In this document: positions 11,687 to 18,524 of the stretch, in pieces | Layout: each line of letters begins with the position of its first letter | Position numbering within the stretch: the first letter of the stretch is position 1 | Sequence record: MH460460.1 | DNA: 64,000 nucleotides | Direction: 5' to 3' (one strand) | Program-made: the position numbers and the translations under genes | Notes under the pieces: model-generated | What the model saw: only the letters and a program-made list of their open reading frames with translations | Told to the model about the DNA's origin: nothing | The model's database searches: none

Positions 11687-11983
11687 ATGATTAGCGACAT
11701 TACAGAGAATTTTATTTATTGTTCCCCTAGCGGAATTCCGTTCCGCGTAAAAGAAATTGCCGCACACGGACAAGATTGTTCTCTGGCTATGGTTGTCTAT
11801 GAGAATTTGGAACCTACGAAAGATTATCCAGCTTTTAAAACGTGGGTACTTCCTGAATCTTTGTTCGTGAAACAATTTTCTGAATATTCAGAAGGAGAGT
11901 TTTATGAACGAAACAATGCTGTTGCCTCATCTGCTATCGCGTCACTGGAATCCCGAAAAGCATTTCGGATGGCTTTCTCATAA
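11687..11983 (+). CDS. DUF1653-like small SH3-fold protein
   Basis: FRVKEIAAHGQDCSLAMVVYENL...TWVLPESLFVKQF pattern. Confidence 0.6.
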   Translation: MISDITENFIYCSPSGIPFRVKEIAAHGQDCSLAMVVYENLEPTKDYPAFKTWVLPESLFVKQFSEYSEGEFYERNNAVASSAIASLESRKAFRMAFS

Positions 11984-12414
11984 TCAATTAACTGTTCCGC
12001 TGTATAGCTTTGATCGCGCAATGCGCGGGGTTCAGGTATACACTCCGGAAGCGCCGAAGAAAGATCCTAATCCTAAAGCGTGTCGTTATTTCACGCGGGT
12101 ATTCGGTGGCAAACAGTTGGTGTGGGGAACGGAAATTATACCTGAACGGGACGACCGTATTCTTAACTGAATCCGTTTTTAAAGCGTGCGCATTGCATAG
12201 CGTTGGCGCTAATGCGTGGTCTGTTCTCGGAAGCAAAGTAAACCAACAATTGAAACAGCAATTGAGTTTGCTCGGCCTTCGCTTTGTTTGCGTAGGCGAT
12301 AACGATAAAGCGGGTGAAGAGTTTGCAGAAACTTTTCTGCACGGATGCACGTCGAATGATCTTGATGAGTTATCTCAAGATGAATTGCGTGAGTTAGTTA
12401 ATAAATTCAGGTGA
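11904..12414 (+). pseudogene. Small Toprim-domain primase-like gene broken by a +1 frameshift near 12130-12165
   Basis: The N-half (11904-12170) has LTVPLYSFDRAMRGVQVY...RYFT...VWGTE. The C-half, in the next frame to 12414, has VFLTESVFKA and VGDNDKAG (Toprim E and DxD). Strong SD (AAGGAG) before 11904. Confidence 0.75.
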
Positions 12415-12606: not shown

Positions 12607-13449
12607 ATGATTCACGCGAGTCCAATTAAATTTCAAGGGAACAAGCGCCAGCTAATGCCTGTTATTCATAGCTTGCTCCCTACTGGCTGCACACGGATGA
12701 TTGATGCTTTTGGCGGTAGCGGTGTTGTTACTGCCAACATGCAATTCAAATCGCGTCTGTACGTTGAGAAACATCCTCAAGTTTTCGAAATCGTTAAGCA
12801 CATTTCGCAGAATGATCCGAAAGCAACTGTACGCCGTATTAAAAACATGGTGAAGAAATTCGCGCTGACTAACAGCAACGAAAAACAGTTTGAGGATTTC
12901 AAGAAGTACGCGAACAACAAAAACGATCCACTGCTGTTTTATATTCTGCACCGCCATGCGCATAGCAACCTGTTGCGTTTTAATCTTTCTGGCGAATTCA
13001 ATACGCCGTTTGGAGATCGTGGTCTGCTTGGTCGCATGGATGAAGTGGAACAGGAGATTACGAAGTTTTGCGAACTCATGGAAGGCGTTCAATTCTATTG
13101 CGGCAGTTACACTGGCGTAGTGGAAGCACTTCTTCGCCGAAAGCAACTCAACGCGAAAACTTTTTTCTATTTCGATCCTCCTTATCTGGCCTCTGGCGCG
13201 AACACTTACGCCAAATGGACAGAAGAAGATGAGCAGCGTTTGCTGAACAATTTGGTAGGGCTTTCCAATCGTAACGTTCGTTGGATGTTGAGCAACGTTA
13301 CAGAACATCGTCATTTCAAAAACCAATTCCTGATTAAATGGTTGAAGAAAAATGATGTAAAGGTACATAAGATCGACAAGCATTATTGTTTGGCGAACTC
13401 TCATCGCGATTCTCATGGAACAAAAGAGATCATCGTGACCAACTATTAG
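12607..13449 (+). CDS. dam: DNA adenine methyltransferase (Dam family)
   Basis: SPIKFQGNKRQL, IDAFGGSG (motif I), RFNLSGEFNTPFG, YFDPPY (motif IV), WMLSN. Confidence 0.92.
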   Translation: MIHASPIKFQGNKRQLMPVIHSLLPTGCTRMIDAFGGSGVVTANMQFKSRLYVEKHPQVFEIVKHISQNDPKATVRRIKNMVKKFALTNSNEKQFEDFKKYANNKNDPLLFYILHRHAHSNLLRFNLSGEFNTPFGDRGLLGRMDEVEQEITKFCELMEGVQFYCGSYTGVVEALLRRKQLNAKTFFYFDPPYLASGANTYAKWTEEDEQRLLNNLVGLSNRNVRWMLSNVTEHRHFKNQFLIKWLKKNDVKVHKIDKHYCLANSHRDSHGTKEIIVTNY

Positions 13450-13616: not shown

Positions 13617-14339
13617 ATGGAAAACTTCGGTGCTATCTCTGCCAAAAGTTTGGGCAGATTCGAGGCATACGCGAAATGGGAATCAACGTTCGAACACGGT
13701 TCCAATTTTGAAATCTTTCTGAAACAGTCCGAAGCAGTACGCAAGGCGCTCTTTCTCAAAGAAGAAGATCTCGAATTGCTCCGCGACGTTTGGCGCACTT
13801 ATCACGTTGGCATTCCGTCTGCGAATCATCAAGTGAACATTGTTATTGCGGCGTTGAATCTCGATCCTATTCAGGAAGTTTTACGCCGCTACAAAGACAT
13901 TTTGGATCAACAAACGATAGTGGATGCTTACGAACATGGTGTGAACATCTACGAAGAAATTGTTCTCATCCAAACCGCTCGCCGTATGGTTGACAGCAAT
14001 ATCGCTATGTATTGCGCGGAAGTATTGGTAAAGGATTACGAAGACCGAAACGAAAATCGTTGTCTTGCTTTTCCGGGTATGCCAAATCTTCACCCACTTC
14101 TGCAAATTGCTTTCGAATACACGGCAAAATATTTGGTCGAGGAAAACGGTTCGTTTGTTAGTTCCATGATGACTCGCTTTAACGATCAACCAATCATCTA
14201 CCGCTATCCGTTGGATATGTCAGACGACGGGAACGTTGTTATTTTAACGGGCGGCGGTTCGATTTATCTGTTAGGCAAACCGCCGCGTACTGATACTGCG
14301 GCAAACCATTTGAAAATTGTAAGGAACACCGATGAGTAA
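13617..14339 (+). CDS. Hypothetical protein
   Basis: 240-aa ORF with SD. Confidence 0.65.
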   Translation: MENFGAISAKSLGRFEAYAKWESTFEHGSNFEIFLKQSEAVRKALFLKEEDLELLRDVWRTYHVGIPSANHQVNIVIAALNLDPIQEVLRRYKDILDQQTIVDAYEHGVNIYEEIVLIQTARRMVDSNIAMYCAEVLVKDYEDRNENRCLAFPGMPNLHPLLQIAFEYTAKYLVEENGSFVSSMMTRFNDQPIIYRYPLDMSDDGNVVILTGGGSIYLLGKPPRTDTAANHLKIVRNTDE

Positions 14340-14586
14340 CGAGAAGTGCGAAGAAGTTGGTTGTGTTGGGTCAGTCAGGCCAGACGGCGTAGAAGGTGTG
14401 CCGGGAAGCGATGAATGGACTCCAGCGGCAGGCAGTGAAAAAGGCAAACTGGAAGATCCGTTCGACAACGAAAACTTTTTCGATAATCTGGAAGTCGATG
14501 AAAATCGCATTCTGGAAATGCAGAAAGGCGGCGGCGAAGTTGTGGAACCGTCTAACGAATGCGAAAGCGGCGCGTGCATGATCTAA
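14332..14586 (+). CDS. Acidic mini-protein ending in an NrdA-like C-terminal redox tail (CESGACMI)
   Basis: 84 aa; C-terminus NECESGACMI versus E. coli NrdA GCESGACKI; second CxxxxC (CEEVGC) at the N-terminus; AAGGA SD. Confidence 0.7.
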   Translation: MSNEKCEEVGCVGSVRPDGVEGVPGSDEWTPAAGSEKGKLEDPFDNENFFDNLEVDENRILEMQKGGGEVVEPSNECESGACMI

Positions 14587-15245: not shown

Positions 15246-15610
15246 TGAAAGAAATTCTTATCACTCGCGAAAGAAGATCTGAAATGTTCAAACAACTTCT
15301 GGCACTCCAAACGCAATTCTTTCATGCGCGTAAATGGACGTGGCGTGAAGGTTGGTGCGCTGGCGAAGAGTGTGACGAATGGATAGATGAATCCGGTTCT
15401 ATTATGTGGGCGTCTGTTCAGGATTACATTTTCTCGCCAGCAAACATTATGATGTTCATGGAGAGACACGAAATCTCTATCGAGCATAACGGAAAAGAAA
15501 GTTACACGGCAATAACTAATACCGGGATTGTTGGTCATGGTATTTGCCACCGTAGCGCTGTATTGACAGCAATGATTAATCACTACAGGAAAGAAAATGG
15601 AATCAATTAA
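15245..15610 (+). CDS. NinX/DUF2591-like protein
   Basis: Start ATG 15245; MFMERHEISIEH...YTA...GHG...SAVLTAM resembles the NinX C-terminal pattern. Confidence 0.45.
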   Translation: MKEILITRERRSEMFKQLLALQTQFFHARKWTWREGWCAGEECDEWIDESGSIMWASVQDYIFSPANIMMFMERHEISIEHNGKESYTAITNTGIVGHGICHRSAVLTAMINHYRKENGIN

Positions 15611-16091
15611 TCTGCCAATCAAAGATCGCGTACAGCATTACCCATTCCTTGCTGCGGCGTTCAGTCTGGCGAATATTTCTAAGGCGCGGCGTCGTGCGTG
15701 TGGCGCTGTTCTGGTTCGCGAGATTAACGGCATTCCGACTATCGTTGGTAGCGGAGTAAACGGAACGGAACCGAAGGAAGAAAACCTTTGCGAGACTCAC
15801 GATCTCACGCTGTCTTTTCCCGGTACTGTTCACGCAGAGATCAATTGCGTTTCTCCTTTTCGCGAGAGCGCAAAAGACACGGACATTCTTTATATCACCG
15901 ATTCGCCGTGTGAATTCTGTCTGGAGTTTTTGAAAACAACTTCGATTCGCACTGTTGTTTTCGCTCGCTGTTATCGCATCACGGAACATATGGAAAAAGC
16001 AGAAGGCTTCCGCTTTATTCATATTCCGGAACAGGCAGTGATTGACTATATGAACAGTTCAATTTCTCGCATGTCGCAGGTTATTTCGTAA
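15597..16091 (+). CDS. dCMP deaminase
   Basis: RRACGAVLV, GVNG, VHAEINC (HAE), TDSPCEFC (PCxxC Zn ligands). Confidence 0.9.
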   Translation: MESINLPIKDRVQHYPFLAAAFSLANISKARRRACGAVLVREINGIPTIVGSGVNGTEPKEENLCETHDLTLSFPGTVHAEINCVSPFRESAKDTDILYITDSPCEFCLEFLKTTSIRTVVFARCYRITEHMEKAEGFRFIHIPEQAVIDYMNSSISRMSQVIS

Positions 16092-16100
16092 GGCGTCAAA

Positions 16101-16553
16101 ATGGATCAAGTCTATAAATGCCGAAACTGCAAACACATCTATGACGGAATTGTTAGTAGTTGTGATTGCAATAACGAACCGTTCAAATACACAACTTATT
16201 TGGCGATTCCAAAACCAACTCTGCGTAACCCAAAACTGATTGATCAGTCGCTCATTTCTCCGGGCGTATGGGTACGCAAAGGAACCACAATTTTCGCAGT
16301 AACGCCTCAGAAGAAATTTATCGTGGGAACAAGTTCTTCTGAATGTGATGATCCGGCACAAGAAGCAGAAGCTGCTATTGCTAATGCGCGTGTAATGGGC
16401 GCGAGCAAATTGATGCTCGAAACTTTAATGGTTCTCCAATCGCATTTCCGCACACGCATTGCTATTAATCCGACTTCGGATGTGCCGCGCTCAATGCTGG
16501 AGTTAGTCAACAACGCAATTCAGTATGCAACTGTCGATGCAGAACAGGAATAA
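16101..16553 (+). CDS. Hypothetical protein with N-terminal Zn finger
   Basis: YKCRNCKHIY...CDC. Confidence 0.6.
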   Translation: MDQVYKCRNCKHIYDGIVSSCDCNNEPFKYTTYLAIPKPTLRNPKLIDQSLISPGVWVRKGTTIFAVTPQKKFIVGTSSSECDDPAQEAEAAIANARVMGASKLMLETLMVLQSHFRTRIAINPTSDVPRSMLELVNNAIQYATVDAEQE

Positions 16554-16555
16554 AA

Positions 16556-17428
16556 ATGGACTACTACTTTTCTCTTGAAGAACTAAGAGCGTGGGCGCGA
16601 GTTTGTTTAATCGTGATCGTATTTGGTTCTCTCTTTTACTCGATGTACACCAACTATGTGCGCAATAAATATGAAAAGATTGCGCGTCGTATGTACATCA
16701 ATGGCGAGCTTGCTGCGGGTCAAGTGTGGCAGCATTATCGCAATAAGCGTTACTACACGATTCAGGTTGTGTCTAATGCTATCGCGAACGGCAAAGAGTG
16801 GCCTCTCACTGTCGTCTATATGACAGCGAAAGGTTACGCGATTTATAGTCGCTCTGCGTCGGAATTTATTCGCAAGTTTAAAATGGTTGACGATGAATCC
16901 AACGCACGCGAAACACCTACTCAAAATCTTTTGTCACTAATGTCGTATGTGACGGGACGAGTTTCATTACCGGAACAAGGTTCTAAATGGGTGCGTGAGT
17001 ATGGCGTGCCTACTGGAACATTTAACGAACTCGGTCACTGCGAAACGCGATTGGTGAAAGAAAAGATTGTGGTTGATGACGTAACCAATCTCAATCAACC
17101 GTGTCCGTATGTGAACTACACCGATCAAAACGGAACGAAGAAAACAATCACGCTGCATCACTTCCGACAAAATTTTGTGAAAGATGTAGTGATTACGGAT
17201 CGCGTGTCGCACTGCATTCTGAATAACGAGAATGTGGCAGCATTGGACGAAGCGACTCTTCGCGATGGTGATCGCGTAACTGTAAAAGAAGTAGTAGATA
17301 ACGAATTTATCGTTGTCGATTACTGCGGCATTTCTGCGAAACTTGTAATGGCTACAAAAGGTTTTTACGTGGGCGCAGAATACGTTATTAATGATGGCTG
17401 TCTGACGATAGGGAAAGACGATGAGTAA
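16556..17428 (+). CDS. Membrane-anchored multidomain protein with a DUF1653-like domain
   Basis: N-terminal TM (VCLIVIVFGSLFY); GQVWQHYRNKRYYTIQ...VVY...IYSRSASEFIRKF. Confidence 0.6.
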   Translation: MDYYFSLEELRAWARVCLIVIVFGSLFYSMYTNYVRNKYEKIARRMYINGELAAGQVWQHYRNKRYYTIQVVSNAIANGKEWPLTVVYMTAKGYAIYSRSASEFIRKFKMVDDESNARETPTQNLLSLMSYVTGRVSLPEQGSKWVREYGVPTGTFNELGHCETRLVKEKIVVDDVTNLNQPCPYVNYTDQNGTKKTITLHHFRQNFVKDVVITDRVSHCILNNENVAALDEATLRDGDRVTVKEVVDNEFIVVDYCGISAKLVMATKGFYVGAEYVINDGCLTIGKDDE

Positions 17429-18524
17429 TTACCCGCAACTGGATCTCACCAAAGAGCGCGACTTTGAAATGTACGCTTACGACAATTACGATTGTTTGTA
17501 TATGGGGCGCGTCGATGCAATCAGAGCCGAAGGGCGTCCGGTGAGCGATCCGAAACGTACAGAAGATCAGTGGCGCACAATTCCCGGTTGTGTTATCCAA
17601 CTTGCAAATACAGCAATGGCTTTCCCTGCGCCGCTTTCTAAAAAAGCAAATTGGGTTGCGGCTGTTGATGAAAGCTGCTGGTTCATGCGAGGCGAAACAA
17701 ATATCAATTCACTCAATTCTAAAATTTGGGATGAGTGGGCTGATGAATCCGGCGAATGTGGCCCGATCTATGGTGAAATGTGGCGGCGCTGGCCTGACCT
17801 CAAAGCGTTCTATGATTACACGCAACCTTCTGGCGTGTGTCCGGATGCCGATGTGATTCGTGCTCGCAAAGAAATCGAACGTATGCGTGCGGCAGGCTAC
17901 AAAGAAACGATGATGCTGGACGGTCGCATTCTGTTTGAAGGCGAAATTGATCAGTTGCTGGAAGCGTTAATCGCAATCAAAGATCGTTCGCGTTCGCGCC
18001 GCATTCGTGTTCAGGCATTCAATCCTTCTTATCTGCATATGCAGGGATTGCCGCCGTGTCACACTGGTTTCGAATTCAACGTGTTGCCGTCAACGCTTTA
18101 TGAACAAACGATCATGCGTGCTGCACACGGAGAAGCGTTCGAAGAAACTCTGCACATTAGCGTCTTTCTCAGATCAAGTGATACCCTATTGGGTTTGCCC
18201 TTTAATGTGATCGGCTATTGCTCTATCTTCCATCTGTTCGCGAAATATTGCGGTCTGAATATCGGTAGCTTTACGATTGACAGCACCAACACGCACGTTT
18301 ACGAACATCACTGGTCGGCGCTGGATAAACAGCGTGAGCAATTCGAAGAACTGGTTGCGGAAGTTCGCAGCACTGGCAATCCGATGCAGTATCCGATCAT
18401 GCGTATCGATCCGAAAATCTTCTCGCTGGAACCGAAAGAACTTCTGGATTCGATCAGCGTAGAAATGTTTAATCTCGAAGGTTACAATCCGAAAGGTAAG
18501 ATTACCGGGCGCGTGACCAAATAA
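17421..18524 (+). CDS. thyA: Thymidylate synthase
   Basis: ESCWFMRGETN, IWDEWADE.GE.GPIYG..WR, EIDQL, LPPCH (catalytic Cys), RSSDTLLGLPFNV, HVYEHH; about 50-aa insertion. Confidence 0.95.
   Translation: MSNYPQLDLTKERDFEMYAYDNYDCLYMGRVDAIRAEGRPVSDPKRTEDQWRTIPGCVIQLANTAMAFPAPLSKKANWVAAVDESCWFMRGETNINSLNSKIWDEWADESGECGPIYGEMWRRWPDLKAFYDYTQPSGVCPDADVIRARKEIERMRAAGYKETMMLDGRILFEGEIDQLLEALIAIKDRSRSRRIRVQAFNPSYLHMQGLPPCHTGFEFNVLPSTLYEQTIMRAAHGEAFEETLHISVFLRSSDTLLGLPFNVIGYCSIFHLFAKYCGLNIGSFTIDSTNTHVYEHHWSALDKQREQFEELVAEVRSTGNPMQYPIMRIDPKIFSLEPKELLDSISVEMFNLEGYNPKGKITGRVTK

Follow-up and report, generated by a model that had tools for sequence, protein, structure and literature searches.

De novo synthesis of DNA precursors proceeds through ribonucleotide reductase (RNR) alone, and no part of the cycle of this enzyme is less conserved or less well understood than the re-reduction of its active site. 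In yeast, Sml1, Hug1, Dif1 and Spd1 are small disordered RNR regulators that act on the large subunit as checkpoint-controlled cellular inhibitors, and Sml1 is reported to hinder the C-terminal tail of R1 in regenerating the active site. The tail of the RNR alpha subunit carries electrons from thioredoxin (Trx) or glutaredoxin (Grx) to the active-site disulfide (PMC9669993, PMC11903788, PMC4078304), and cryo-electron microscopy has shown that this tail and nucleotides compete for one pocket (PMC11903788). That the electron-supply parts of RNR can move between polypeptides is indicated by a glutaredoxin-NrdB fusion of Facklamia ignava, in which the reductant is joined to the enzyme (PMC6187632); in the locus analysed here it is the enzyme's arm that appears to be detached, and it is encoded by a virus without the enzyme. 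This locus is JA13_020, a gene of Dickeya phage vB_DsoM_JA13 (MH460460.1; 254,061 bp; Salmondvirus), which was studied within a stretch of 64,000 nucleotides (the window) whose coordinates are those of the genome. Dickeya, the host of this jumbo phage, is a plant bacterium.

An initial annotation of the window had described an 84-aa open reading frame (ORF) with its own Shine-Dalgarno sequence, acidic and probably disordered, which would carry the RNR alpha redox tail as a free-standing protein. The ORF list, the GenBank coding sequence (CDS) and the ribosome-binding motif all agree with the gene so described, the elements of which are:

14321 to 14325, plus strand: Shine-Dalgarno-like AAGGA, 6 nt upstream of the JA13_020 ATG, read from the sequence
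14332 to 14586 (stop included), plus strand: JA13_020, 84 aa, ATG start and TAA stop; GenBank CDS 'hypothetical protein', with homologs and purifying selection
14332 to 14451, plus strand: variable N-terminal extension, residues 1-40, rich in Gly, Pro and Glu; predicted local distance difference test (pLDDT) below 55; missing in most family members (alignments A2 and A3)
14347 to 14364, plus strand: N-terminal C6-x4-C11, lineage-specific; the aligned residues of P0001, P0002 and JA29 are G or H (alignment A1)
14452 to 14583, plus strand: conserved core, residues 41-84, near-invariant in Salmondvirus-type orthologs; profile core of 54 positions
14500 to 14523, plus strand: predicted amphipathic helix ENRILEMQ, residues 57-64, with the best pLDDT of the AlphaFold2 model (about 70-76)
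14527 to 14538, plus strand: GGGE motif, residues 66-69, a family signature missing from RNR alpha tails; G66, G67 and E69 invariant, G68 in at least 90% (alignment A3)
14560 to 14583, plus strand: RNR-alpha-type redox tail CESGACMI (C77, C82 and C-terminal I84), the same motif as in RNR alphas and unique in the genome
14603 to 14636 (hairpin to 14626), plus strand: terminator-like hairpin and T run, from a terminator scan; RNA fold of -16.9 kcal/mol, z = -2.84

Within the core, an acidic-hydrophobic stretch leads into a short helix, after which come GGGE, a linker and the Cys-pair tail. The acidic character (pI 4.05; 21 D+E against 6 K+R) is plain from the composition, and disorder is supported by an AlphaFold2 prediction built on a 21-sequence alignment, in which the protein reaches a pLDDT of 59, is mostly disordered and has just two short helices (residues 49-52 and 57-64). 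The model contains neither the beta-alpha-beta arrangement of the thioredoxin fold nor the ten-stranded alpha/beta barrel of an RNR catalytic core. No Pfam family was matched at E <= 1, be it an RNR barrel domain (Ribonuc_red_lgC and related), thioredoxin/glutaredoxin or PF13876, and with its 84 residues and CESGACMI end the protein looks, by sequence, like the free-standing tail carrier that had been proposed. Across the C-terminal 44 codons, the ratio of nonsynonymous to synonymous substitution rates (dN/dS) is 0.10-0.23, indicating purifying selection. A second CxxxxC noted at the N-terminus is present in JA13 (C6 and C11) and is gone from P0001, P0002 and the JA29 ortholog.

The likeness to RNR lies at the carboxyl end. 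JA13_020 ends in NECESGACMI and Escherichia coli NrdA in DDGCESGACKI, with seven of the last eight residues equal and the same distance to the stop, so the near-identity first noticed by eye stands; the last 27 nt are identical to E. coli nrdA at 23 positions. The comparator here is E. coli NrdA (locus L020) and not the NrdA of the Dickeya host. Its contig was found by a pattern scan of IMG/VR with the back-translated motif, and its long ORF is 100% identical to annotated E. coli nrdA. The whole JA13_020 gene had no blastn match in E. coli genomes.

That scan returned 216 motif matches, 187 of them in ORFs that are homologous to RNR alpha outside the tail, and in 174 of these 187 the motif stands exactly two codons before the stop. 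Eleven of the 216 matches lie away from any C-terminus and represent the chance background, from which about 0.5 short ORFs with the motif at the RNR position would be expected (11 x 3/64, an estimate); 13 complete short ORFs without RNR homology carry it exactly there. A degenerate motif followed by a stop has a single occurrence in the window, and 100 shuffles yielded no instance. With a position-specific scoring matrix (PSSM) derived from 68 distinct RNR alpha tails, the C-terminus of JA13_020 scored 22.4 bits (z = 8.4), and the runner-up among 2950 open frames of the genome scored -3.2. We also reasoned that, if these ends are copies, RNR alphas with the variant tails should exist: three were found with CEGG[GA]CKI and five with DCEGCKI, and both scans also returned many short ORFs.

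Compared with the tail of E. coli NrdA, JA13_020 thus shares C-E-S-G-A-C-x-I at the carboxyl end, placed after an acidic disordered linker. It differs in being unattached to the catalytic barrel, in having no similarity beyond about 18 residues and in possessing an extra GGGE-helix segment. Searches of PDB chains with the full protein, with its last 25 residues and with the A1 profile gave chance matches only and no RNR, because the likeness is too short for HMMER. The acidic-hydrophobic N-terminal part had suggested, strikingly by eye, mimicry of the NrdB tail, the last 10 residues of which dock on NrdA. This likeness proved only compositional: against 2000 shuffles, a PSSM of 77 NrdB tails gave z = -0.05 for JA13 and a mean of 0.59 over 37 family members.

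Split nrdA genes were also encountered in phage contigs L011, L030, L051 and L101. Endonuclease- or intein-like ORFs lie between their pieces, and the last piece (138-345 aa) retains the YY region and the Cys-pair tail.

Stand-alone homologs of JA13_020, which the initial annotation had suggested looking for, are numerous. The closest (P0001, P0002 and JA29_019) keep the C-terminal 44 residues almost unchanged and vary in the N-terminal 40, having all lost the N-terminal CxxxxC. Versions of 54 aa occur in Erwinia jumbo phages (Alexandra and the pEa_SNUABM series) and in Dickeya phage AD1. A profile search of 5.8 billion proteins gave 20 clusters, and a HMMER scan of 1.84 billion representatives gave 39 clusters at E <= 0.001, none of them an RNR. 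In the 21 aligned homologs of A3, G66, G67, E69, both C-terminal cysteines (C77 and C82) and the terminal I84 never vary and at least 90% have E78 and G80, so the Cys pair on which the proposal depends is conserved. Family members, JA13_020 among them, are recognised by a short helix followed by GGGE, an acidic linker and C-x(2-4)-C-x-I at the C-terminus; the spacing of the cysteines is mostly CxxxxC, with CxxxC and CxxC also occurring. On these sequence features, JA13_020 is assigned to an uncharacterised phage protein family.

Twelve of the 39 clusters are longer proteins (115-296 aa) that bear the module at the C-terminus, behind a low-complexity linker. They comprise three unrelated N-terminal domains (types A, B and C), for which Pfam gave no match and PHROGs matched only the tail module. 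The matching profile, phrog_10239, has 47 positions and no functional annotation; it is matched over the C-terminal module by the relatives P0032 (7e-9), P0047 (1.5e-10), P0027 and P0025, and not at E <= 0.1 by JA13_020 itself. Every tail copy found carries the annotation 'hypothetical protein'.

Beside this family, podovirus-like, lambdoid-type and jumbo contigs contain short phage ORFs (42-134 aa) with a CESGACxI or CEGGACKI terminus and no GGGE motif (L044:4685-4822, L076:2122-2262, L080:3397-3537, L115:3234-3416, L079:2288-2659, L241, L246, L251, L253 and others). The protein of L076 is 48% identical to the family member of Serratia phage PCH45. A non-acidic 134-aa ORF ending in FTYLDCEGCKI recurs in many prophage-like contigs (L283, L284, L286 and 54 further loci), and may be a real gene or an alternative frame.

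The annotation of JA13 lists no RNR among its 323 genes. A tblastn search of the full genome with seven class I/II alphas, four NrdBs and one NrdD likewise found no homolog of NrdA, NrdJ, NrdB or NrdD, which eliminates the earlier suggestion that JA13_020 complements a tail-less phage NrdA. Any RNR partner must therefore be that of the host. Among the small ORFs of JA13, no redoxin motif of the CGPC or CPYC type was seen.

A detached, conserved and abundant-looking copy of the flexible tail of class I/II RNR alpha in a phage that lacks RNR most simply acts on the host relay. With moderate confidence, we consider JA13_020 to be a free-standing, trans-acting mimic of the NrdA redox tail, which would enter the electron relay from host Trx/Grx to NrdA. 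Host thioredoxin or glutaredoxin would reduce the disulfide of the JA13_020 tail as it does that of NrdA's own. The resulting dithiol would then be able to reach into the active site of host NrdA, the pocket in which a disulfide of the C225/C462 type exchanges with the native tail. JA13_020 would in this manner affect, in trans, the half-cycle in which the host class Ia enzyme is re-reduced. Added binding or positioning is probably provided by the helix and the GGGE-acidic segment that are specific to the family.

The neighbourhood of the gene bears on the direction of such an effect. The genes concerned are:

13617 to 14339, plus strand: JA13_019, 240 aa, function not assigned; its stop overlaps the JA13_020 start
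15597 to 16091, plus strand: deoxycytidine monophosphate (dCMP) deaminase (PF00383, E = 3e-11), syntenic with the tail gene in Erwinia phages
17421 to 18524, plus strand: thymidylate-synthase homolog (ThyA), 367 aa (PF00303, E = 4e-53), 54-59% identical in Erwinia phages

The tail gene lies 1.0 kb upstream of the dCMP deaminase and 2.8 kb upstream of thyA, within the 1-3 kb first estimated. All nucleotide genes of JA13 operate at the level of deoxynucleoside monophosphates (dNMPs), and the dNMP-metabolism cluster around JA13_020 is syntenic in Erwinia jumbo phages, where the tail gene stands between dCMP deaminase and ThyA, followed by homologs of JA13_024 and JA13_025. Proximity to these two genes is thereby seen in two phage genera. 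In 105-kb contigs, the tail gene follows a DNA polymerase gene and is near NrdD, NrdG and ThyX. Yersinia phage fHe-Yen9-02 (first 50 kb), in which the tail gene adjoins an RNA 2'-phosphotransferase gene, is syntenic with JA13 and is thus not an independent lineage.

Serratia jumbo phage PCH45 (MN334766.1, loci L388-L392) offers a second line of evidence. It encodes a 49-aa family member at 111024-111173 and, at 124783-125889, an NrdB that is 80.6% identical to E. coli NrdB and has a host-like C-terminus; no NrdA, NrdJ or NrdD was found in it by tblastn. Such a host-like NrdB can only work with host NrdA, and PCH45 therefore manipulates the host alpha subunit. The pairing of NrdB with a tail protein in a phage without NrdA leans towards a supportive role. 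Because of this pairing and of the dNMP-metabolism neighbourhood in JA13, we lean slightly towards support of deoxynucleoside triphosphate (dNTP) supply as the effect, JA13_020 adding reducing-arm capacity to host NrdA.

Several observations weigh against a reducing arm for host NrdA. The family profile stops short of RNR alpha proteins beyond the tail, which limits the likeness to some 8-18 residues. Four tail variants (CESGACKI, CEGGGCKI, CEGGACKI and CEGCKI) are found among phages of a single host, Erwinia amylovora, and give no support to a strict co-variation of phage tail with host tail; since the tails do not strictly track that of the host, a tolerant partner such as Trx/Grx is argued for over the NrdA pocket. 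The occurrence of the tail on Acb4-family proteins and on three uncharacterised domains, as judged from sequence, would also fit a redox arm or hook that is portable and directed at other targets.

A competitive block is accordingly a serious alternative, with JA13_020 acting as a Trx/Grx decoy or filling the pocket shared with nucleotides. The sequence data would fit both an arm in trans for the host enzyme and a Trx/Grx decoy, as the initial annotation had allowed, and they give no decision between them. In the form of a pure decoy or inhibitor, which would depress host RNR turnover by soaking up reduced thioredoxin/glutaredoxin or by blocking the pocket of NrdA, we regard this explanation as rather unlikely, though it is the strongest of the rivals. 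The protein is small, acidic and disordered, tail and substrate share one pocket (PMC11903788), and the tolerated CxxxxC, CxxxC and CxxC spacings suit redoxins of broad specificity. The dNMP-level genes of JA13 would allow salvage from host DNA to partly replace reduction. Sml1 provides a precedent: inhibitors of its type are short and disordered like JA13_020, but they bind R1 without copying the Cys-pair tail and are not viral, and no search revealed a sequence relation between them and JA13_020. On the other side, JA13 has no RNR of its own as a fallback, and the host-compatible NrdB that PCH45 encodes beside its mimic sits badly with a shutdown of host NrdA.

The tail is also found on proteins of known anti-defence function. 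PF13876 (Acb4-family) proteins of N4-like phages end in an acidic linker and CEGGGCKI, CEGGACKI or CEGCKI; they share these two elements with JA13_020, which has no Acb4 domain. The fusions located are:

L272:1781-2200, Acb4-family tail fusion
L267:1088-1456, Acb4-family tail fusion
L325:1913-2266, Acb4-family tail fusion
L360:441-758, Acb4-family tail fusion
L376:11321-11665, Acb4-family tail fusion
L021:341-769, Acb4-family tail fusion

Acb4 is a cyclic-nucleotide sponge against the cyclic-oligonucleotide-based antiphage signalling system (CBASS) (bioRxiv 10.1101/2024.12.30.630793). In Table S3 of that study, 27 rows end in these tail motifs, from N4-like phages of Erwinia, Escherichia, Pectobacterium and Klebsiella; its authors mention 'additional extensions' on Acb4, which are left unexplained, and do not describe the Cys-pair tail. 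Sponge domains are often joined to other anti-defence domains (bioRxiv 10.1101/2025.07.12.664507).

The Acb4 fusions raise a counter-defence reading that was absent from the initial annotation. The tail would be a portable module or hook for immune evasion, whether by recruiting or trapping a host factor that depends on thiols or by sensing redox state, and its likeness to RNR would reflect a shared partner (Trx/Grx) and not RNR itself. In addition to the 27 fused proteins and the habit of sponges to join other anti-defence domains, the genomic context of the tail gene is not conserved between lineages, and in the lambdoid-type contigs L076 and L080 it is moron-like, adjoining lysis genes. Our literature search, however, found no defence system dependent on thioredoxin or on the RNR tail, and RNR is pointed to by the NrdB of PCH45 and by the nucleotide-metabolism genes around the tail gene in JA13 and its relatives. 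We judge this explanation improbable for JA13_020, and less so than the others that follow.

There is little to recommend the idea that JA13_020 serves as a reducing arm for a phage-encoded partner, such as the product of JA13_019, in parallel to the fused forms. The start codon of JA13_020 overlaps the stop codon of JA13_019, the tail gene of Erwinia phages similarly overlaps a 160-aa ORF that precedes it, and 12 of the 39 clusters carry the module at the C-terminus of longer proteins. The two genes are likely co-transcribed and possibly translationally coupled. The genes directly upstream of the tail gene in JA13 and in the Erwinia phages are nevertheless unrelated, and neither is related to the fused N-terminal domains; JA13_019 was rejected as a conserved partner, having no homolog beside the Erwinia tail gene and no relation to the fused domains in hhalign comparisons. 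In PCH45-type contigs, a 259-aa fused form is found at the same locus as a 49-aa form, and the N-terminal domain is therefore dispensable. JA13_019 had been said not to be NrdA, which the lack of a Pfam and of a tblastn match upholds; its AlphaFold2 model (pLDDT 52) was too poor for use.

A non-functional 3' remnant of a lost nrdA, or a chance ORF, is close to refuted. The 23 of 27 shared nucleotides and the existence of split phage nrdA genes would suit a remnant, against which stand the purifying selection, the conservation of GGGE across distant phages, the gene's own Shine-Dalgarno sequence and terminator, and the fact that, in phmmer searches with tail-less RNR queries, no NrdA similarity was left upstream of the tail. 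Least credible of all is the precursor of a secreted or modified peptide with a double-glycine-type leader and a disulfide-looped core, to which the GGG run ahead of the 16-residue Cys-pair segment and a radical S-adenosylmethionine (SAM) gene 1.5 kb downstream of the tail gene in fHe-Yen9-02 might point, since the hydrophobic positions in A3 do not fit the -4/-7 spacing before GG, no peptidase-transporter or maturase adjoins JA13_020 in the JA13 annotation and the core equals an RNR tail.

Viral molecular mimicry is a known kind of strategy, which in JA13_020 would be applied to the redox tail of RNR. A full-text literature search for 'CESGAC' found no paper, and looking for phage proteins that act on RNR or Trx brought up nothing relevant and no description of such mini-proteins. 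The recurrence of the tail on unrelated short ORFs, on uncharacterised domains and on Acb4 sponges suggests a modular tool missed by annotation. We tentatively propose, as a broader idea that could well prove wrong, that phages of Gram-negative bacteria widely deploy detachable RNR alpha redox tails, as mini-proteins or on other domains including immune sponges, to control the host deoxynucleotide supply or thioredoxin/glutaredoxin from outside the enzyme. If true, this would constitute a previously unrecognised route of control, and PCH45-like phages would supply both trans visitors to the active site of host NrdA, namely the beta subunit and the reducing tail. A viral protein that consists of little beyond the reducing arm would be a natural probe of how this arm locates the redoxins and the active site and of whether it can work in trans, and also of how phages without RNR secure or redirect dNTP synthesis. 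Annotators can recognise such proteins simply, by C-x(2-4)-C-x-Ile at the stop and an acidic linker ahead of it.

Further observations concern the neighbouring genes. The ThyA homolog, with 367 aa against the 266 positions of the Pfam model, carries insertions and may be either an ordinary thymidylate synthase or an enzyme of the hydroxymethylase type. JA13_024 (16101-16553, plus strand) begins with a CxxC...CxC zinc-ribbon-like segment, and its Erwinia homolog lies directly downstream of the tail gene. Upstream, a primase-like frame at 11904-12414 (plus strand) is divided between JA13_014 and JA13_015, two pieces in two frames with one frame change, both conserved in the Erwinia relatives. 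The genome also contains two D12-class adenine methylase genes, one at 198369-199592 of MH460460.1 (plus strand; L004:48369-49592) and one in the window at 12607-13449 (plus strand), which is 48-51% identical in Erwinia phages.

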